This document shows, piece by piece, positions 10,989-26,492 of a stretch of 64,000 nt of DNA (positions are counted from its first letter, which is position 1; the number at the start of each line of letters is the position of its first letter). Made by a program: the position numbers and the translations under genes. This DNA comes from Kudoa neothunni (taxonomy: Eukaryota > Animalia > Cnidaria), in NCBI GenBank assembly GCA_964304625.1, contig OZ199838.1, positions 11,557,608 through 11,621,607 on the forward strand, in the 5' to 3' direction. A model generated the notes under the pieces. It made no database searches, had not been told where the DNA came from, and saw nothing but the letters and a program-made list of their open reading frames with translations.

Positions 10989-13900
10989 TTATAATTCGTA
11001 GACTACATCTTTGGGATGCCTTGAGTAAACCGCGATGCCGACAACCACAAAAATTGAAGCCACAATTGGTATTAGACCATAAATGCTAAAATAATTATAT
11101 AAATAACCGATAATTATATTTACATGTATGGGAAGAGGGACCTATTCAAAAGTTAAATATAGATAAGTTGATTTAAAGCTACGAGTTGATATTCTTCGCA
11201 GCTGCATGTTCTTGTTTCGGCTTACTATCTAATTTACATCGGATAATCTTATAAGATAATTAAAAATATATTACTAAATATAAATTATAGAAACATTTGA
11301 CAAACTTATTTTATATCTACCCCATTTCAACCATTTTTATAACTTTTTGAAAAATGTCATCTATATCGATGTTCTCATGTTCACTTCTTATTTGTTGTTC
11401 TTTTATTAACAATTGAGTAATTTTGTTTTTTATTTAATTACTAATAAGAATATAATATACAGAATATAATCGTAGTTATTACCCTGTTGGTTTTGGAGTC
11501 TTTGAATCTTTGTTATATATAAATATTAAAAATTGCAACATAACAAATATTTAATTTACAAGAAATTGCATAATTTTCATAATTAGAATAATCCTTCACT
11601 TTTACTGAAAATACATAATCTTTATCTTTTGACAACCCATTAATTTCAATGTCACATCCGTTGGCTGAACAGCCCTCGTCATCGTTACACCAAGTATTTG
11701 TTGATAATATTTGATCAGCAGATGTTTTCTCTTTCAATATGAATGGACATCTACTAGTCTTTTGTTTCCCATTAAAATCCACGCGAATTTTCAAATCGGT
11801 TCCGTCTTTATATTTATAACTAACAGATGTTTTTCCACTCACTAAATTCCGCTATATTCATTTAACTGCTGAATTTGTCATACCTGTGGTAATATTGTAG
11901 GTTTTAACCTTCATCCCATCTGATGGTTCCACAGTCATACTGTAGGTCTTTCCTAATTCCAGGTTAATTATTTGGAACTCACTGTCGCATTTGTTTTCGC
12001 AAATTCCCAATCTCTCACAAGTGGCCATATATGTTTTATCCGCTCCACCTTTTTTACCTAGTTTCTTGAGGTAAACTCTACAAATTGGTAAAGAGTTTTC
12101 AGTTTGAAATGGTGTGACTGTAACCGTTCTGTTAGTAATATTTGCATTATCATTGTTAACATTTAGATCGCTCCCATCGTCTAAACTGATTTAGATGTTG
12201 AGAATTTAAATTATATTTACTTGTTCTAAATATTGTTTTCTTGATGTACTTTTCACTGAAACCAAGGTTAGTAATTTCTACTGAAACTACGTAACTCGAT
12301 CCAGCCACCAAAGAACCAATGAAATAAGAAGCTTCACAATCAGTATTACAGTCAGTGCTTGGACATTTGGCTCTGGTTTCGATGGGAATGACATTGGCTT
12401 TATATATATTTATTGTACAAGCTGGAGCGGCATTAGCATCAACCTTGAATTTTTTGTAAGAATCTAGTCCAGTGAGTTTTACCCCTGAGCTTGTAATCTC
12501 AGTTAAGTTGAAGCCATTGTCATCTCCTACAAAATTTTAGCTATACGGTTGAAAAATTTGTATACTTTTGAAATATTGTTTGAATTGTTTGTTATCAACT
12601 CTTCTCCCAACGATTACACCAACTTTTTTAGATTCTTCCGTCAAACTAATAATACCATCTTGACAAAGTTGATAGCAAAAACCTTCAACATCTTTACATT
12701 TATTCAAAATAACACTTTCTTGGTCATCACCTTCATTGTTGACTTTAAATACTTTGACGTAACACATTTCATCATTGTAAGGACCAGATGAGAAACTTAT
12801 TTTTAGTTTTTTATGGTTTCTATCAACACCGCTGATGGAAAATATAATATCAGATCTCAAAGGAATAATTCTATTCAAGTATGTATTATTCATGTAATAG
12901 ATTATTCCTGGCCACATATCTGTGGAGTAAATTTTGTAATAACTCATGAATCTATCTATCGACAACGAAGCAGTTCTTGTTTCAATGTTGTCAGAATAAC
13001 TGGATAGATTTAAGCTATCTTTGAGAGACGAGCTGAAATCATCATTATTACCATCGACTTGGATTTCCCAATTTGCCACTGAGTTAGATTTATAGGAAAA
13101 ATTAATTTTGCCTTCTGTATGACTCAAACCATAAAATTGTTTATGTTTGTAATCTACCAAATAAAATTAATATTATAAAATAAATTATTTATTAAATTAT
13201 AAACAATTTTGTAATAGGAATTAATAAGTATGATTATTAATTACCCATTTTAATTGTGAAAACATTCCGTTGTTTGCATTTTTTTGCTTCTTCATCACTT
13301 GGGCCATAACAAACCAATACGTATCGATCAATTTTTGAATTGATATTTCCAATCTCAGCATTGTTAGCATCACCACCCATCAAGCAAAATTCATCATTTG
13401 TGTTCGATTTGCATGTCGGTTTTACGAAATCAGAGTTATCAAACTTTGATAATTTTAAAACACATTTAGTGTTAGCTGAAAATTGGGAAAGTGATATAGA
13501 GAAATTATCCTGCTCAGTCTTTCCTTTTGTGACGAATCCTTGATGAAGTTTCCCACGTCGGGTAAATGCTACAAATGTATTTACACATAAAATAAGATAA
13601 ATTAATTTTACCAGGAATAGCAATCTTAAATGGCTTTGATTTCTCTTCTACATAAATAGTCAGCCGATAATTAAAATTTCTGTTGTAATATATGTTCTGA
13701 AAATTAATTTCACTGCATTTTTTAATATTTGAATCATCGCTAGCACATCCAATACACGACTGCACTATTTCAGTAGGCGATGCTATATAAAATTATGATT
13801 GTAATATAATAAATGTAATTACTATTATTTCCTTTGTGCTTAGATAACTGATAATAGCAATTCTTATCGTTTGCATCGGTAATAGCGTTATTATGATTTA

Positions 13901-16900
13901 TTACGAGTAGGTTTTTCTTCGTATCATTTGAAATTTTAAATGTAATGCTCTCACCAGCTATATATTATTTATTAAATTTTAATTAATATTTGGTACCTGT
14001 TTTTTGATTATCAATAATTTTTACATTATAATTTCCATTCGGCACTATTCTGATACTATACGTGACATCGGAGTAAAGACCCTTGATAGTGAAAGAAGAG
14101 CTGCACGTTTTTACGCACAAATTATTATCTGAACATATGGCTGGAAGATAACCATTCTTAGAATCTTTTTCTTTCACGTAAATAGTGCATGTGTTTGATA
14201 CCGATGATGTAGTTGGAATGAATGTGAATCCATCTGTATTTGAAGTCACCGAGATTATTTTAGGTGAAAGGTTATTTGATTGAGCTTAGAAAGATAGAGT
14301 AAAGAATCAATTATTGTAAATAATACTTAGTTTGTGATAGAAATATTTTCTTAGCTTATAATGAGGTATGCTTGTTATGGTTGCCATGATATCATTAGGT
14401 AAATCAGCTGGTGCGGGTGGTATTTCCATATTAGAGAACGCGCAGGAGGGAGAAGAAACGTCTGACCTTCCGTTTTCACTAATCAATGGAGCATACGTAT
14501 TCCATATCTTCAACGAGCATGCAACCGGAGTGGACTCTGCAACAGATTGACCATCTTCATCCTTACTATTAGCTTCAAGGTTAATTTTGACCTTGTGCGT
14601 TTGCTCGTTAGTTTCCGCAGGAATATCATTTCCATGATTAACTAAATAAACATATTATATGAAAATATTTATATTATTACGAAAATAAATGTTGTTTTGG
14701 TAACCAATGATAGGAATCATTCCATGTTTAAGGACACGTATTTTTACTGCTTTTACGCTTGCTGGTATATTTCCGAAAGTGATTTCACTGCAGAGATTAT
14801 AAAAGCAGTTAACTCTGTTTTCACATCTGTTCGAAAAAAAATTATTTGAGGCTGAGAATGTTGCATCTATCCATTCAAAAGTGCATATTTCAGAAGGATT
14901 CTCATTGGTTAGTTTAACAGTGAGACTTCTAGGTCTTTTGCCAACAGCCAACTCGTAATAAAATCTACTGAATATAGGTGCGTGGGTTTTCACGAATGTA
15001 TTATCATAAAAATAATGGAAATCAAAATGATCAGGACAATCTATGTGATAATCCTCCGTAAGTTCACCCAACTGAACGGAATAGTGCCCAAAGGTACAAA
15101 TATTGTTACTGGTTGTTGTAGTTTCTGACGTACCGCCTTGTACTTGCGTATCCTTGTGAAATTTACACGACTGTGCACATTTGCTCGTTCCTAGTTGTAT
15201 TTTATCCCCATCTAGTTTTGCTATGTAATTAATTTCCTCGTAATCATCTTATAAAAGTTACACTTATCAATATTTATTTATATATTGTATTACCTATAAA
15301 ATAGGAAAAAACCCTCCCTATGTTGAATGTTTTTATTGTTGAAGTCGAAGTTGGAGGTAACTGACCAGGCTCCGGTGTGTCCTTCTGACCCTCCTCTCCC
15401 ATTCTTCCAGTTACAGGGGGTTGAGGAGTATTGACTGTTTCAGTATGCTTGTAAGTAACAGAAATATAATTTAATTTCCGCTGAGAATTAAGGCTAATAG
15501 CAAATTCATTTATAAGCTGATCGCACCGTTTTTTTAGTACGTCACTATTTCCATCAGCACTCTCATAACCAGACAAATCAGAGTTGGCTCTTTGCACTAT
15601 GCAATCATTATCAGATACGTTGGCCGGTTTACCTTTAAACTTAACCTTGTACCCACTAGACGATGCGTCGTATCTTAGAATCATACCATCGGTAACTTCT
15701 TTTTCGTTTACTAAAAATAATATATTGAAATCTGGCTTATAATTATAACAACTTGTTATTTCTTTCTCAACTGGTTTAGCTTTATCTTGATTTATCACAA
15801 TGATTTTATAAGGAAAACCAATGTTAAGTTCGGTCCACTGAATTTCAAACGTATTTGTCCCAGATACAGCTACAGTTTTTTGACAATTGCCATTCAAACA
15901 ATCAATAATTATTTGGTTGGATGTTTTTTCAACAAGAAAATAAGCCCATGAACTTCCTAATGACGTTTCTGATGAAGCGGTCATGCTAAACGTCGTCTTT
16001 CGACCATCAGCATCATCTACTGAAGAGACGGTGAATGCCACTTCATTAGCTATTATAAAATAAATAATTTTGCGTATCTATGATATTACTTTCTACTCCA
16101 TCACTTTCGGCACATGTATATCCCTTTGTACATAGGGTTATTTTATATGTTGTTTTTGGATCGAGGTTAATAATATTGAAAGTCTTAGTACAAATATCCG
16201 AGCAGAATTTTTTAGTTTCATTTATTTCGCAAGTAGCAGGATATTTGGAGGATAAATCCCCCACTACCGCGTAGTAAAGTTCACACTCTGAGCCTGAATG
16301 AACTCCACTTGGGAAAAGATTAGCTGGATTTAGAGTTAATTTTGTATGTGCGTTTGCAACAATTGATGGAGTAAGATTATTATTGTTAAATTTAGTTCCT
16401 ATCTTACATTTAAAAGACAATTATTTTATATGAATACCTTCGGTTTTGAAATAAAAATATCTGTGATAATATTCTACTTCAGGTGAATCTAAGGTGGTGA
16501 GTCCAGTTATTTTAATTTTTAAAACATATTCTGTTAATGGCTTAAGTTCTGTAATTGTGATTGAGTTAAAATTCTTGCATTGAATCACTGCTGTACAGGT
16601 TGGATTTACGCCATCAGTTTCAACTCCAAGATATTTTTCTACAATTTTCATTTCAGTAATTTTAGATTTACTTTCTACGTCGGCGGTGCCCTCATTTTTG
16701 TTCAAAGCGGATAAATCAATAGTGGCTTGATTATTATTATTATTGTCAAAGGTTACACTAGGCTGGGTAGTAACGACTAAACTAAACTAAAATTAAATTT
16801 TTTTAAATATATTACATGTCACGAGCTGAATAAACTCTTTTGGTGTTTGGTTTACTTGAGACACGACAATTACTTGAGCAAACTTCAAATCAGAGTCATG

Positions 16901-17836
16901 CTGGAGGGTAGCTTTGTAGCAAGGTTGTAAACATGGTCCAGCTTTTCTCATATCTGAACAATGAGACGAAAAATGAGACTCGTTTATTTCTTTTATTCCA
17001 AAGTAACAAATTTTTGATGGCTCTGGGTTTTGGAGTGTTATAGTGTAATAATACTTTCCTCTCTTATCTACTTTCGATCCAGTTGCGATAAACCAATCCT
17101 GACTAGGTTTTTCTGGATTCAGGAATATTTGAGGAGATCGGCTGGTAAACTCAACAACGGACGTAATTCGATACGAAAGGGAACTTAATTTAAGAGTTTT
17201 CGTAATAAATTTATTATCTGACGCTACATTAATTTTGGTTGTGCCATCAATAGACCTGAATTCATCATTTAATTTGCTTTTGATGGATATATTAAATTCA
17301 TTATCTTCCTTTTCTGCTTTAATATCAGTTTTTATGTAAATATCTATAATTGTTTTCAAAAGAATTATTATAAATAAAAAACACCTTTGAGTGGGTACAC
17401 TCTTTTGTTAATACACTTTTTTACCTCTGTATCGTCCTTTCCTTGACACCACCTTACAAACTTTATTTTGTCCATTTCTTTCTCATTTATAGTAAAGTCG
17501 AGTTTTTTACAGTCATGGAGACACAAATTTGAAGTTGGATCCAGGGTTGAGCTTGTCACAACAGTGGTACATGCTGTAAATGCCTTTAAGGCTGATTGAT
17601 GTCTATCATAATACTGAAATGCACATTTTCTATGACTATTCTCAATATTGTATCCAGAAATTAAAATTTTGTATCCTTCTTCATTATTTAAATAAAGTAA
17701 CTTTAATACATTGTTGTCAATATTATTTTTAATATTTTCATCAGAATATACTAAAAAATAAATAACAATCGAGATTTTAACATAAAATACCTTTAAAAAT
17801 AAAGATATATTTTATAAAAACATATGTCAGTAACAT
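10989..17836 (-). CDS. Gene B: large type I membrane protein with ~15 exon-encoded Cys-rich FN3-like modules (~1945 aa, 22 exons, two nested introns)
   Basis: Exons: 17836-17791, 17750-17385, 17343-16816, 16776-16438, 16398-16090, 16049-15753, 15710-15294, 15247-14681, 14641-14327, 14284-13997, 13957-13823, 13782-13612, 13568-13245, 13153-12566, 12526-12221, 12180-11884, 11841-11560, 11507-11484, 11399-11322, 11228-11183, 11141-11124, 11085-10989. They total 5838 nt with no internal stop seen. Signal-like N-terminus MLLTYVFIKYIFIFKVYS. TM IIYGLIPIVASIFVVVGIAVY followed by SRHPKDVVYEL*. Confidence 0.85.
11229..11321 (-). other. Predicted [D1,2] spliceosomal twin intron (gene B, second)
   Basis: ATG G | G | gtagat...ttag (11320-11274, 47 nt) | taata...ttag (11273-11229). 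This gives a new GTAATA donor, a 46-nt outer intron and an in-frame GAT AGT AAG. Confidence 0.75.
11400..11483 (-). other. Predicted [D1,2] spliceosomal twin intron (gene B, first)
   Basis: ACA G | G | gtaata...ttag (11482-11441, 42 nt) | taatt...aaag (11440-11400). Removing the inner intron creates a GTAATT donor for a 42-nt outer intron and restores the frame (GAA CAA CAA). Confidence 0.75.
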
Positions 17837-20800
17837 AACGAGTTTCTGAATGTTTTTAGTCGTTAGACGAAAAATTATACCAATTTATTACTCTAATACT
17901 CGATTGTTATCATTTAAAAGGAGAAAAATAAATCCTATTAGGTATCTTAACAATAGTTATTAAATTCATCCATATAAATAATTTCTTGATTGTATTTCTG
18001 ACAAAGAGAAAAGAAACTATATATTTTTTACTGACTTAACAAAAAAATTGGATTCCTTTAACTTAACATGAAGTAAGTTTTGGAGTTGTATTCATCTCGA
18101 AAAGGAGTCCAAGTCCTTTAATATTTTAAGATAAATATTCACCTTACTTCCAATATTTAATCCATAGCTGGTTTTCGTTGCTTTTCGGCTCTGGCATATA
18201 ACCGCCATAAAAACTTTCATTGTTTTTAAAATTTTATTTTTTTTTAATAACAATTAATGAATTCATTTCTAATTTATTACTACAGTATAATTATAGTTAA
18301 TAATGTATTTGTAAAGATATGATAATAAATAGCTCATACCATGTGCTTAGGTAATAATGCAACGAAAAATTTATGATATTAGTCTCTTTGAAGAGTATTT
18401 TTGTAAATTTAGAAAAATTATATTTAGTTATATGATATAAATTTAACTTAAGAATTACAGACTTATCTAAGATAAGTTATAACGGAAGTAATGCGAGGCC
18501 AAAAAAGCAACGAAGAACGACCAGCATGCTAAATCCTAATAATCCCACATTTGTTAATTGAGAGATGAGATATAGGAATTTAATCGACGCAGTTGATGAC
18601 ATTGATAATAACAAAATAAAACTGAATTTTCAATCCGACACCAACAAATTTATTTTTTCACTTTCTGGATACAATATTGAAAATAGTCACAGGAAATATG
18701 CTTTGCAGTATTATGATAACTTGGATTCTTCATTAAAGGCTATACCAACCTGTACCACTGATATAAAAAATGCTAAGGCTAAACTTGACGAAAATTCAAA
18801 AAAATGCATTTATGATTGCAAAAAAGTCGAAATAAAATTTGAGTATGATGCATTTAAGAAAATTAAATATTTAAGATGGTGCCTTTAAATTCGCTCAAGT
18901 ACTTGTAAAATCAGCCGTGCAATCAGCATCAAAAGAATTTATTCAGACAGTGACATGTATTCAGTTGAGCAATTTCAACTTTTTTATAATATTTTAGTTG
19001 GTAATAGTCAACTTTCTGTTACCCATACAAATAAAAATGAAGAAATAACCCTTGATTTGTCTAAGTTGAATAAAAACGAAGATAGCACTGTAACGAATGG
19101 AGGTATTATTACAGAAATCAAAATAATGGAAAAACATTCGAGGATCGAAAGCTTTGGAGAAGATGCAAAATGTAATGGTGAATGCAAAGAATTCAAATTG
19201 GAAACTATAATGGAACTTACACCGTTAACTGAATACATTCTAAAAATTGAAATAACAGGATTAACAACATTAGATTCACCTGAAGTGAAACATTATCATC
19301 GATATTTTTATTTCAAAACCAAAGGTAATTTGATGCTTAAAGATTCGTTTAAATATTTAATTAGGGAATGAATTTCAAAATGGAAAAGAAATCATAACAT
19401 CGACCACTACCGTAAAACATACATAGTTATCCCAGACTGTCGCCGATCTCTTTGCAACCGGATCTAATAGTGGTGCCATATGTGAACTGTACTACTTTGA
19501 AGATGTAACTAACCCCTCAAAGTTCCCAGCTACATGCGAAAAAGAAGATGAAAAAGCATTTTGTTCTGATATTTGTGCTGGTCCATTTAAAATTGTAAAT
19601 CTTAACCCAAAAACGAACTACAAAATTACCGTTTGCTCCAAAGGTTATACTTGTGCTAATACCTCTCAGATTACTAGTATTTTATATTATAATAATAAAA
19701 CAATTATTTTAAATAGCTAATGGAATCATTGTAAGTGTAAAAAAGTCAGATGATGTTAACGTACAGAAAGTGACTGTCACCATGTCCACTTCTTCAAGCG
19801 GAAGCCTTGGAAGTTCCTGGAATTTTATGATGATAGAAAAGGAATCTTTGGAAACGATAGTTGATTGTTTGAACAACGATTGTTCTTCCATTGTAACCTC
19901 AAATACTATTAATTTTCAACGGGAAACTCTTGCTGTTGATATTGCTTATGAAATAATTGTAATTAATAAAGATTATGCATTGCCAACGAAAATTGAAATA
20001 TTAAGTAATTAATTTAAAGAATAATATATCTAATTATTTTAGGAGGATCAATTGAGAGTGATCAAAATATGACCGTACGATTTTATTCAAAAGAACAAAC
20101 GTATAAAGTGAAATTCAAAAGTGATTTATTCTCCGACAATGTTAAACAATGTACAGTTAGATTATCCAATGATAAACTCACTAATTATGTGGGTGTCAAA
20201 AGTGAGACGGTTGTTCAAAAAAATTGCAATGAACTTGTTGGAGAATATCCTATTGATCATAATAATCAAAATAAGCGACATTATGTTTCTGTCACTTAGT
20301 CAGAAATTAAAAAATTTGATCCTTTTGAATCATGGGAGGCTGCAATATATACTGTTAAGGCAATTATCGACAAAATTTTTAGTAGTGTTTTTAACGATAT
20401 TGCCAATAAATCTGCTCAAAAGTCGCAACCAACTAAAACAGAAGCAGGTTCAAAATCAAAACGAACCACCTTCACTGTAGGGAGGGTATTTTCGTACTTC
20501 ATAGGTAACATTAATTGTGATAATTACTTTAACTTGTTTAAGATCATTATGAGGAGATAACGCATACGGCAACATTGTATGAAGACAAAATCAAATTTTC
20601 CGTAAACAAGTGTCCATTAAGCTGCAATGAATACATGGATGAAAAAAGCATAGGTTCTTTCACCGTAGTTCAATCTGGAAACGATTGTAACCCTGGCAGT
20701 GGCACTATTCAATTTGGCGAACTAGTTAGAGACTACTACCTAAGTTGTCAAAAATATTTCGACCTCCACTATTTCTATGAAAATTCTTTTATTAAAAATA

Positions 20801-23800
20801 ATGCACCCGTCTTTAGCAGATATTACTACGAATTAGCGATAAATGATGTAAATAGTAAACTCACCATCAAATTGGTTAACGAAGAACCTTCCGAAATATG
20901 CACCTTCGAATGGATTGACGCAACTAGCTCATCACCTAATAGATTTTTCTCAAACACTTGCGAGAATAATTTTAACTGTCTTTTCAGTTTATGCAGTAAT
21001 GTTACGTTTGGAAATATTCCAACACGTGTAAAGGCAGTAAAAATACGCGTTCTCAAATTAGGAATGGCACCTACTGTTGGCTACCAAAACAACATTTATA
21101 TATGTAATAGTTTTATTAATGTATAATATTAATAAATATTTAAGTAAAACATGGGAATGATTTTTCTGTGACTAGCTCCGAAGATAGTAAAATAAAAATT
21201 AACATTGTTACTAACAACAAAGATGAAGATGGTGCAGCAGTAATCGGCGATTCTACCGCAGATTGCGAATTGAAGATCTGGAATGCGTATGCTCCATTAG
21301 TCAGTGAAACAGGGAGGAACGCATCTACCAATTCAACTGGATGTATTTTTGGAGAAATAAACGTTACACCAAATCCAACTGATTTGCCAAACGATGTTAT
21401 GGTAACAATAACAAATATACCTACCCAATTATTCACCTAGAAAATACTTTTACCATAAAATAAGTAATTCTTCATAATTTTAAATTGTATAATAAATAAT
21501 TTAGCTCAATCAAATTCTCTTACTACTGAAGAGATTTCAATTAATACAATTGCAGATGGATTCACACTTACTCTAAAGTCTGAATTAGGAAAAATTTGCA
21601 AAATTTACATAAAAGAGAATACTACGCCTTATTATCATCCTGCTATATGCTCGCAAAATAAATTATGCGTGGATAAATGCGACACGCGATTTAGCATCAT
21701 TGGGTTGCATTCGGATACGAATTACGATATAAAAATCGTACCTAGTGGAAACTATGCGATTAAAATCATCGAAAATAAGAAAACAAGTAAAAAGCTTCAT
21801 TTATCGCTAATTAAATTTTAAATAGCTGGAACTACAATTGAATTCCATATTTCAACACAATCAACAAAAAACAACTTAATAATAACACCAATACAAACAA
21901 TTAGTGATGGTAGTACTACTAATTGTTATTATCAATTATATGTACACGGAAAAGAAGACAGTAATAAAAATAATTTTACTTTTGTAATTTATATTTAGTC
22001 GCACCAACACGTATACAACAGTCTTGCGTCGAATGCGATAAGGGAACAAATAATGATCATAATATCAATAACAAAAAGTGCGACAATATTCGGTTTGATC
22101 ATACATTCTATAACAACAGGTATAATTACAGATTATTGATTTATGTAGAGGGAAAATCTTCATTGTTTAAAATCGCGATTCCGGGTAAAATTAGTCTAAT
22201 TTTTTATGTAATATTTTGTTAGCTTTTTCTCGAACTGGGAAACTTACACAAAAATTTATACAACGAAATCAAGATAAAATTGAAAAGCTATTTATTTTGT
22301 TATCAGATTTTCCAAATAATAATAGATGTGCTGTAAAAATATCAAATTTGGAGGAGAGTCCTGAATTAATTAAACCATCATGTGCTTCAAAGGATGACAA
22401 AAATTTTGTCTGGTGGCATGTACAGAAACAAACGTTGATATAGGGTATGTTAATTCTAAAATTGATCGATACATATCAATTTGTTATGGAATAACTGATG
22501 AAGACGCGAAAACCTGCAAAACGGCTAGAGTTTTCTTGACAAAAATGGGTAAGTCTATAATTATTATTATTATAAGTGATTTTTTAATCGTTAATCTTAA
22601 AAAATTAAAATCATTATTTTCTAAGACAGTTGATGTAATTATAGAGCTTTTTCAATTAATTTTTAGGATCTACTCAAAAAAACACTTACATAATAAATCA
22701 TGGTGACGGCGAAACAAAGTTTACTTACAAACCAATATCGATAAATAATTGGATGGTGTATGTCGATGAAAAAATTGATTCAGTTACCAACATTGAAAAA
22801 GATAAGTTAAATATAGCAAGTTACTCAACTGAAATAGAAGATAAGATCGCAACTTTCTCGGTCGATAGATATATGAGTTATTATAAAGTTAACTCAACAC
22901 TTATGTGGCCTGGAATATTCTATTTCATAAATACCACCATACTGAATAGCATTATTCCTCTAAAATCAGAGGTTATATTTTCTATAACGGCTGTTGCAAA
23001 TAGGAATAATCAAATTAAAATTAAATTCTCCCCCGGCCCGTATAACGATGAAATGTGTTGTATAAAAATATTCAAGGTGGATGATAGCGGTAAGGATCAA
23101 TTAAAAATTTTTTTGAATGTGTGCGATAACCCTGAGGAAGGATGTTACCAACTTTGTCAAGATGTAATTATTAATTTGAAAAAAGATTATCAAAAAATTG
23201 GCGTAATTGTTAAACGAAGATTTGATTCTGATGGATTTAAACAATATTTTAAAAATAATATTAAATTTTTTTCAAATTTAATTTTTCATAGGAGGAGACA
23301 AAAACTTCGATTTGCGTGAAATCACCGATTCTGGAGTTACACTTATTGGTCTAAACAACTACAACAGTATTAAACAAGGAGAAAATGAACAAACGTGCAC
23401 CATTAATATACGCAGATCCAACACTATATCTGCTGAAACAACAGCTCGATGCAGCAATGGTGATTGTGACTTTAAATGTAGTAGTTCGTATTCGATCATT
23501 GGTCTTGCTGCTGGGACAAATTATATAATTTCAGTAACAATTACAAGCCTTGGTTTTGTTGGATCTTATGTCAGAAAAGTTTCTTTTAGAACAAGTAAAA
23601 TTTTATTACAATCCTCATAACTTATACATAATATCTAGCTGGTGGAACTGACTCGGTTGCATCAGAAGCTTCAGATTTAGCGATTAAAGCAGGCAACGCT
23701 ACTTTGACACCCTTTCAAGCAGATAATTTACTTCCAATATGCAGAATTTACCTTAAAAGAAAGGATGAAACGTCTCCAAAATTTATGGCTACATGCGACG

Positions 23801-24326
23801 GAATTGGAGCTTGTGAAAATAGATGCGGCAGTTCGTTTAAAATAGTAAACCTTGAATTGGGTGTTACTTACGAAATAATTGTGGAACCATCATATGGAAT
23901 AAAGGAAAAAAAATTTGATATTACAACAGGTGAGAAATATTTTCTCACCTTATAATAAATGAGTTAATAGCTAACGTCAAAACAAATGTTGCGATAACAT
24001 ACGACAAAGAAAGTGATATAAAAATTAAAGTAAACTCTGATAATAAAGAAGGTACCTCAAAATGCCCATTCATGCTACATGAGAAAACTGATGCAAACAA
24101 ACCGGAGCCCATAGTTGTATGGTGTAGTGACGAGGAGGATTGTTCAGCCAATGGGTGTATTATCAGTCTCAATAAGTTATCGAAGGAAAAGAATTATAAA
24201 CTAAGAGTGAAAGTGAAGGATTTATCAACCTATAATATTCACGAGATTCCATGTAAATTAAAATCCTAAAATGTAATAACTTAAATACTTTTTACGATAA
24301 AGACTTGAAAATTTCAAAGTTGCAAG

Positions 24327-24412
24327 GGTAATATTAATAGAATTAAATGTGTATTTAATGCTATTTTTTAGTAAATTTTATATTCACACTGATGTATTAT
24401 GAATATTTATAG
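24327..24412 (+). other. Predicted [D1,2] twin intron (gene C, first)
   Basis: CAA G | G | gtaata...ttag (24328-24371, 44 nt) | taaat...atag. New donor GTAAAT and a 42-nt outer intron. Confidence 0.72.
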
Positions 24413-24493
24413 AAGAGCATAACATAAGGAGCGAATATACCAATATTGAGGTGTACGATGACGTTCAAAAATTAATTAGGAAAGTTGAAAGGG

Positions 24494-24580
24494 GGTGATC
24501 ATATCTTTATCACTTCTTATACTCACATTTGTTTTAGTATATTTTTATATTAAACCAATTAACACCAAAGAAACATGTAG
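24494..24580 (+). other. Predicted [D1,2] twin intron (gene C, second)
   Basis: AGG G | G | gtgatc...ttag (24495-24537, 43 nt) | tatat...gtag. New donor GTATAT and a 44-nt outer intron. Confidence 0.72.
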
Positions 24581-26492
24581 ATAGCAAAGAAAATCATGAC
24601 GAAAAAGTTGCAAGAAATGTTGCTTCGTAAATTTAAATAAATATTTCTCATTGTTAATTCTTTTTAGATCGGTTGGAAGATATATGTAAAGTAGAATTCG
24701 ATGCTTTGTGATTTATTTATTTTAGTGCATACGCAATGATTCCAATTGTGGCTGGATTACTGGTAGTGCTAGGATTGATAGTTTACAGAAGAAACTCCAG
24801 CGACGATACCTACGAGTTGTAAGCACATCGACCTAACCGTAGATTAATTTATTATTATTATTATTCAAAAGATATGTTATTATTTATTATTTTTTTATTT
24901 GATTTGGTTACTATATATTTTATCATGCCAGTGCAATCTATTTCATGAGATGTACGCAACAATAATGACGAGAAATCTTCATCAAATCATTTCACGTTGA
25001 ATTCATTTTTATACCGTCGCGACGGTTATTTGAATATGTTCAGGGAAATTTTATTCATTAATTAACCATATCTGATATACCTATTTATATTTAAACATCA
25101 AATTAAAGTTCCATATGTTTGACAATTTTCATTTGAATGATTAATGAATGAATAATATGTGCAATTGGATTTATTTAGATTTTTATGAATAACATATATG
25201 TTTTAAATAATATTTATAATTTATAGATTTTTAGGATTTTAGGATTTTATTGTGGTCAGTGGCTATTAACATATTAGCGTATAATCTAATGTTGTCGGGG
25301 CTGTTTATTGCCACGAAAACGAATTTCTCCTAATTCTGATGATGTTCAGACTTATAATTTTAGTTATTATTTTTCCATACTAATTTCTAATAAATTTTAA
25401 ATTTTCGCGTTAAAATATACGATATAGATTTTACGATAAAAATCAACCTTCTTTGCCGGCTTTACGACAATTAGTGGCTAAAAATCTAAAGTATAGGTTT
25501 ATTTATACTTACAAAGCGATTTTTGAAATAATTTCTGTTGTTATATTATCTTAATTAAGTATTTTCAGGCAGTTTTGAGTCCTATTTTGATGATCTATCC
25601 TCAAATCGACCCAACTAAATCAGATCCATTGTAAGTACACAGCCTATATATACAATTCATACTATTTAAAAGATATTTAATATCTCAATTTTTAGTTTAA
25701 CTTTCTGAGAATGCCAAACAGCCTATATACCAAACGTTTTTTGGGTCCAATAGATCCCAAGTGGATTTAATTTCACCTAAACTCCTAGCTGGAGTCATCA
25801 TTTGCGTTTAAATTTTTGTATTTACATATTGTCTATTTAACTGTTTTTCGACAATAGGTGGATTTAAAAAATCTTTTACCCGTGAACATGGCAGTTCAAA
25901 TCTGTTAGGCATGGAGTTATGTAGCAGCAGCTTTTATGATAATTTATTGGTAGGTAAAAACGTGAAGAATCCAATTCCGAATATTTAAAATAAAAATTAA
26001 GATGATTTATATGACATATGGCTCAAAACGAAAAATTTTTACGTTCAAGGATGAGAGGCTTTGTGGTAAAAATTTCGGATGGTCTGTTTACTCCGTAAAA
26101 TTATTTTATAAAAAGAGCAAATAGGATATTAACAATAATAAATACAAAACCGATATTTCTGATAATGTTTTACAGAAAATGACACTTTAAGATAATTTTA
26201 CACGGAAAAATTATTATAATTAAACATTATAATTAGCTATACAAATAATTCCTGTAAAATAACTTTAAATTTTAAAATTCCGTTATTTTATTAAATTCAA
26301 TGTATCATGGGCCAATAATAAAGTTACAATACCAAAAAACTCCCAGAAATTATTCCATTCTACAGATGGAGGAATGGATACAGTTAGTTGAATTTTTGTT
26401 AATTATTTACTTATCGAACAATGAAAAGATGATCGGCCGCTACGTTCCACATTTTGTTAGATATAATGTCAATAAATGCACATGTGTTATAC

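Follow-up and report, generated by a model that had tools for sequence, protein, structure and literature searches.

How does the reading frame of a gene reach a transmembrane anchor when, at two of the intervals in its tail, one-step GT-AG removal soon runs into a stop codon? This question is raised by gene B, a chain of exons coding for cysteine-containing domains on the minus strand (~17500 to 10989) of a 64,000-nucleotide (nt) window of the Kudoa neothunni genome (contig OZ199838.1, 11,557,608-11,621,607, forward strand; feature positions below are positions in this window). A preliminary description of the window, which assumed an animal-type genome, had read the two intervals as [D1,2] stwintrons, spliceosomal twin introns in which an inner intron lies between G1 and T2 of the outer donor. 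The host is indeed an animal (Myxozoa, Cnidaria), and we conclude, from anatomy, conservation, and reading frames, that both ~90-nt intervals are probably true donor-disrupted twin introns, removed by two ordinary splicing reactions.

Results

Gene models were built by hand and by script from the DNA letters of a genome of 40,260,978 bases, in contigs of 17.15, 12.04, and 11.05 Mb and one of 18.2 kb; the window is C1:11557608-11621607. This assembly, recovered from yellowfin tuna sequencing data, has been described as 40.2 Mb (N50 12.0 Mb, 30.4% GC) in three chromosomes plus a circular mitochondrial genome, with an intron length of 49 bp (Table 2 of PMC12239612). The last large domain exon of gene B, E1 (11560-11841, minus strand, as for all features of this gene), was recognized from its open frame and its splice sites, and its last base, T 11560, leaves it in phase 1. 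It is followed by a canonical 52-nt intron, I1 (11508-11559, GTAAAT..AAAG), whose splice sites were read directly, and by the 24-nt exon E2 (11484-11507; ..SKTPKPT, ending ..ACAG), which has the same length in the paralogues. The two candidate [D1,2] structures, S1 and S2, come next and read, on the minus strand, exon|G|GT..TAG|TA..AG|exon. S1 (11400-11483, 84 nt) consists of an outer G at 11483, an inner GT..TAG segment at 11482-11441 (42 nt), and a remainder TAATTA..AAAAG at 11440-11400 (41 nt); with the upstream G counted, the outer intron is 42 nt long, and the donor rebuilt after the first step would be GTAATT. After the 78-nt exon E3 (11322-11399; EQQIRSEHENIDIDDIFQKVIKMVEM, ending ..ATGG), whose peptide is conserved family-wide, S2 (11229-11321, 93 nt) repeats the design with an outer G at 11321, an inner GT..TAG at 11320-11274 (47 nt), and a remainder TAATAT..TTAG at 11273-11229 (45 nt), giving an outer intron of 46 nt and a rebuilt donor GTAATA. 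Exon E4 (11183-11228, 46 nt; DSKPKQEHAAAKNINS, starting ATAGTAAG), placed by frame and family peptide comparison, precedes exon E5 (10989-11085), whose frame encodes a transmembrane helix and a short tail, ..YEL, up to the stop TAA at 10991-10989. Both structures were read from the sequence, and the coordinates, lengths, and motifs previously given for 11483-11400 and 11321-11229 proved correct to the base.

Removal of the full 84 and 93 nt leaves a single frame, ..PT-EQQIRSEHENID.. across S1 and ..VEM-DSKPK.. across S2. One-step GT-AG removal from the inner donor (83 and 92 nt) leads to TGA after 5 codons at S1 and to TAG after 1 codon at S2. The frame hinges on one G, and an assembly error at this base had been named as a possible refutation. 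At the first site, the GGG is confirmed by a DNA contig of run X1 that matches 11407-11499 without difference; this contig spans the first site only. With the same G at ~150 sites of the related genes described below, a homopolymer assembly error can be ruled out as the cause.

Paralogue C lies on the plus strand (~18400 to 24822) and is likewise a chain of cysteine-containing domain exons. It had been cited for the conservation of the tail peptide, and it carries the same two structures. In the first (24327-24412), G 24327 is followed by an inner segment at 24328-24371 (44 nt) and a remainder at 24372-24412 (41 nt), with a rebuilt donor GTAAAT; in the second (24494-24580), G 24494 precedes an inner segment at 24495-24537 (43 nt) and a remainder at 24538-24580 (43 nt), with a rebuilt donor GTATAT. 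No simple route other than removing the first structure takes the frame of E2 into the EEHNIRSEY frame, and since this structure totals 86 nt, the frame argument is independent of a multiple of three. Only removal of G, inner segment, and remainder together links the conserved frames of B and C without loss of conserved residues. The first structure often has a tandem outer acceptor, TAG|AAG of the NAGNAG type (24406-24418 in C, and many paralogues). Splicing could then use either of two in-frame sites 3 nt apart, which leaves one codon of uncertainty in where E3 exactly starts.

To follow the structures beyond this pair, the translation of 11561-11839 was used as a query against the genome, all 66 matching copies were fetched, and their tails were parsed by script. 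The 66 paralogous exons are 42-100% identical to E1. Both structures were parsed automatically in 57 copies; six of the nine failures have both by eye (63 in total), having been missed through anchor problems or, in one copy, a homopolymer frameshift. The remaining three have no recognizable tail, so that every copy with a recognizable tail carries both structures. One copy (L050, C3:9022040-9023420 of assembly G000) is among three near-identical tandem copies and differs by one base in an A-run of E3 that breaks the frame; either this copy is a recent pseudogene, or the assembly has a homopolymer error here. In the 57 parsed copies, E2 is exactly 24 nt throughout, the I1 position holds a canonical intron of 49-136 nt (median 62), median lengths are 44 nt (38-57) for the inner half and 45 nt (36-54) for the outer, and the frame runs on into the conserved exons after nested removal without exception.

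One-step GT-AG splicing to the outer acceptor meets a stop in all 57 copies, at a median of 5 codons (at most 26) for the first site and 1 codon (at most 7) for the second. Such early stops would suit a reading in which the tail stays unjoined in most transcripts: ordinary one-step splicing would end translation early, the protein would be anchorless and secreted, and the downstream exons would be relics or parts of rare isoforms. Frequent intron retention, reported for myxozoans according to a passage citing such work in PMC12239612, points the same way. However, E3, E4, the putative microexon described below, and the transmembrane exon have conserved peptides and no stops in >55 copies as well as in a second subfamily, which makes relic status unlikely, and we hold this reading to be very improbable.

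The signals themselves were examined in 19 representatives with intron identity below 80%. The outer G and the inner GT are invariant. At the inner acceptor, AG and the T at -3 are present in 100%, and T at -4 to -6 in 78-89%, except that position -6 of the second structure is mostly A. After the mid AG comes T (the parse imposed only T at +1, plus a preference for T[AG] at the second site), then A in 94-100%, A in 84-94%, and A in 68%, with T again in 78-94% (first structure, positions 5-6; second structure, position 6). The mid junction is thus the strongest motif of the structures, an acceptor consensus followed by positions 2-7 of a canonical donor as found in intron I1: TTTTAG is a model acceptor, and TAAAT together with the upstream G makes GTAAAT, the usual donor of this genome. 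A suitably placed mid AG|T[AG]A occurs in 34 of 38 sequences, versus 5% in shuffled interiors.

Inner halves start with GT[AG] and end with TAG, in most cases behind a T-rich tract. Rebuilt donors read GTAAAT, GTAATT, GTATAA, GTGAAT, and similar, matching the I1 donor (GTAA[AT]T) at positions 2-6. G|GT and AG|T occur at both sites in B, in C, in the 57 parsed and six by-eye copies, and in the sister subfamily and second-species contig described below. The outer G usually follows another G, less commonly an A, and at the first site a C in some copies. As this preceding exonic base would be codon position 1, the junction codon changes are conservative, with E, K, or Q at the first site and D or N at the second. 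The donors read GTAAT, GTAAA, GTATT, or GTGAT, and none has the U12-type consensus [AG]TATCCTT; by these motifs, all four splice sites appear U2-like (GTAAT/GTAAA donors). At parsed sites the mid junction is always AG|T followed by A or G, never the AG|GT of a recursive site.

The statement that only the ordered two-step route keeps the frame was too strong. Because the exon is left in phase 2 at the inner donor, a canonical acceptor is available wherever the next exon has an in-frame AGN codon. One-step splicing could therefore run from the inner GT to a cryptic AG formed by the first two bases of an AGN codon in the next exon, at +13/+16 nt into E3 and +4 nt into E4 of gene B, as a 96-nt GT-AG intron; Gly would replace E-Q-Q-I(-R) or D(-S) in the protein. 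In a variant of this route, the second half would leave first as a canonical A|GTAAAT..AG intron, followed by the same cryptic step; this order yields no product but the cryptic-acceptor one. All 57 parsed copies offer such a frame-keeping acceptor at the first site, because the conserved Arg and Ser there are AGN codons (the Ser of ..SE[YH] is always AGT or AGC), and 43 of the 57 do so at the second. Nor does a weak acceptor disqualify the route, given that intron I1 in this family mostly uses AAG acceptors. On the other hand, the route fails at the second site in 14 of the 57 copies (5 of the 19 representatives), loses residues whose amino acid identity is conserved family-wide, and gives the strongest motif, TTTTAG|TAAAT, no role. 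Introns of this genome average 49 nt (PMC12239612), yet the route would have the spliceosome pass over a model acceptor lying ~44 nt behind the donor. We therefore regard cryptic-acceptor splicing as unlikely, and the nested reading as the better account of both sites.

A strict pattern scan of the genome matched a gene that the E1 search had missed and so led to a sister subfamily of 14 surface-protein genes (L069-L082; C3:2.22 Mb, C2:2.58-2.64 Mb, and C2:10.28-10.31 Mb of G000). Their tail peptides are unrelated to those of gene B; both structures are kept, and a microexon and a transmembrane exon are present. The inner intron of the second structure measures 94-116 nt in nine of ten parsed copies, where the outer half is 47-51 nt, and 48 nt, by eye, in L069. 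In all ten parsed copies the exon after the second structure has no in-frame AGN codon for a one-step rescue, and cryptic-acceptor splicing fails there.

The sister genes also bear on a third explanation, direct noncanonical GG-AG splicing, by which the 84-93 nt would leave in one step and the central motif would serve another purpose. The mature mRNA would be identical to that of the nested route, and the arguments from exon frame and conservation fit equally. To our knowledge, no spliceosome accepts, as a rule, a G at donor position 2, here the second G of GGT. Direct splicing gives no reason for the invariant GT after the first G, for the model acceptor in the middle, or for the donor-like TAAAT behind it. 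The internal sites are conserved like functional ones, and each half keeps a normal intron length even where the other has grown to 94-116 nt. Direct GG-AG removal thus appears quite improbable.

Other arrangements were considered and rejected. A loose enumeration of canonical GT/GC-AG paths (20-200 nt, up to three introns) returned many frame-keeping routes; those inspected place a donor within a conserved codon or treat an intron half as coding sequence, and their course varies between copies, so that none serves as a family-wide model. Two introns around a microexon within each double sequence would need GT and AG at places where they do not occur. The acceptor-disrupted [A2,3] type does not fit, as the second half is followed by an A where a G would be needed.

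Beyond K. neothunni, a profile of E1 compared with 1.8 billion proteins found one true relative, P0007, a single-exon open frame on a Logan contig of run SRR33849685. That contig (L066) belongs to a different, AT-rich species and carries both structures, the first as GGGTAATT..TTTCAG|TAACTA..AACAG and the second, ahead of a transmembrane exon, as AAAAG|GTAATT..TTTAG|TAACAA..TTCAG. The other profile matches that were inspected are repeat artifacts, and the rest cover only ~20-30 profile positions. A word-based protein search with E1 gave no match, exon-by-exon protein searches found no transcript-derived relative, Pfam had no match for seven domain exons of gene B (e.g., 15277-16077 and 12540-13166), and Rfam had none on the window. 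Judged by these searches, the family is a lineage-specific orphan.

We define the superfamily as the family plus the sister subfamily, ~80 surface-protein genes. The preliminary description had proposed a genome scan for G|GT..AG|T units. In such scans most matches fell inside the superfamily; outside it, they stayed below the reversed-pattern control. The pattern GGGTAA N30-50 TTTAGTAAAT has 23 matches, 21 inside and 2 outside the family, against 6 for its reversed control, and GGTAA N30-50 TTTAGTAAAT has 33, 26 inside and 7 outside, against 20; the scans cover this one consensus only and show no excess beyond the superfamily. One of two outside matches inspected (L068) lies without coding context. 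These counts reject a genome-wide spread: the nested structure is limited to one gene superfamily and is no genome-wide splicing mode.

The last interval of gene B (11182-11086, 97 nt), formerly taken as a single intron, most likely hides an 18-nt microexon at 11124-11141, with AG| and |GTAA flanks and mini-introns at 11182-11142 (41 nt) and 11123-11086 (38 nt). An in-frame, stop-free 18-nt candidate with the same flanks is present in 52 of the 55 paralogues modeled for this intron; its counterparts are 21 nt in the other species and 24 nt in the sister subfamily. Skipping the 18 nt also keeps the frame, so use of the microexon is presumptive. In paralogue C, a probable 18-nt microexon at 24668-24685 precedes the transmembrane exon (24726-24822); its coordinates and frame were set by hand, with the family pattern taken from other copies.

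Two further observations concern the surroundings. Genes B and C stand head to head (17400-18450), their first recognizable exons ~900 nt apart, and the stretch between them may be a shared bidirectional promoter region. A (TAAACC)n telomere-type array occurs at only one contig end (G000 C2:12039536-12040071), in agreement with the published report of this repeat at one chromosome end only (PMC12239612).

Discussion

From the arrangement of the tail and its conservation, we infer two splicing steps, their order, and the mature junctions. In the first step, the spliceosome would remove the inner mini-intron (GTAAT..TTTTAG, ~44 nt), which has the usual intron size for this genome. The lone upstream G would thereby join the TAAAT behind the inner acceptor to form a normal donor, GTAAAT, which would then be used to excise the second mini-intron (~45 nt). 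The mature mRNA would read ..ACAG|AACAAC.. and ..ATGG|ATAGTA.., and translation would go on into the transmembrane exon. Two standard U2-type reactions in obligatory order would suffice, with nothing special needed. The suggestion of a previously undescribed splicing system was thus overstated, there being no excess of such units outside the superfamily. The [D1,2] geometry itself proved exact and is kept far beyond the B/C pair, in the 63 family copies, the sister subfamily, and a second species; on this distribution, the arrangement appears to be an old, inherited tail feature of a lineage-specific superfamily in K. neothunni and at least one relative.

Several points weigh against the nested reading. 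The cryptic-acceptor route, with its frame-keeping AGN codons at every first site and at most second sites, keeps the frame, so DNA alone does not force nesting at the first site. A hand translation of the second structure of contig L066 indicates that a canonical reading can also reach the transmembrane frame. The ~150 sites descend from one or two ancestral positions and do not represent independent origins. The gene models come from DNA: the locus is contained in four sequencing runs, all as DNA contigs and all from one sample (run X1 is DNA), and RNA runs X10 and X11 and DNA run X9 held no read of this organism, because their species label evidently denotes the host fish. According to the assembly paper, hardly any host RNA reads map to the parasite, and the gene models of that paper are therefore without RNA support as well (PMC12239612).

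The closest known systems are the [D1,2] stwintrons of filamentous fungi (Aspergillus, Hypoxylaceae, and Xylariaceae; PMC5639578, PMC9024468, and PMC12403724). There, too, an internal U2-type intron lies between G1 and T2 of an external U2-type donor, each half is as long as an ordinary intron, and excision has to follow a set order. The Kudoa structures differ in their animal host and in standing as a tandem pair, 78 nt apart in the tail of the same gene, with halves of only ~44 nt. Fungal "sister stwintrons" have spread to new positions, whereas those of Kudoa are inherited with the gene family and show no sign of spread. Sequential excision has been demonstrated in fungi by reverse transcription PCR, whereas the Kudoa case is known from DNA.

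Recursive splicing at ratchet points, or zero-length exons, is a feature of Drosophila Ubx and other long introns, and recursive-splicing exons occur in vertebrates. Ratchet points read AG|GTAAGT, with the regenerated donor supplied wholly from the downstream side, and subdivide very long introns. Removal in consecutive steps, with a 5' splice site regenerated at the first-step junction, is common to both systems; in Kudoa, however, the junction is AG|T, with the G supplied from the upstream side, and a complete unit measures ~90 nt. The U2/U12 twintrons of insects and vertebrates, alternative and competing introns of two spliceosome types (PMC3564746), likewise place two spliceosomal introns at one position of an animal gene, but they do not form an ordered pair, and the Kudoa sites are all U2-like. 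A literature search on myxozoan noncanonical introns and on spliceosomal twintrons returned, for animals, only these U2/U12 twintrons. In line with the earlier remark that no report from an animal-type genome was known, stwintrons are described only in fungi in the part of the literature that we searched. If the [D1,2] reading holds, the Kudoa genes would add an animal case to a kind of intron known from fungi.

The paired structures might also act as a gate. Completion of both steps would yield the membrane-anchored protein, while a halt after step one, or one-step splicing, would yield a truncated, anchorless (secreted) form, so that splicing kinetics would set the ratio of shed to anchored antigen; we give this idea only an outside chance.

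Stwintrons have been used to study intron origin, one-base shifts, and intron multiplication. If the reading proposed here is true, the design arises and persists in animals as well, and a spliceosome tuned to introns of ~45 nt would cope with longer interruptions by splitting them up. The usual gene predictors and read aligners, which are limited to GT-AG introns, would then mis-model such genes, whose true junctions look like "GG-AG" introns, and annotation would cut short an entire family of candidate surface antigens in a fish parasite that spoils food.

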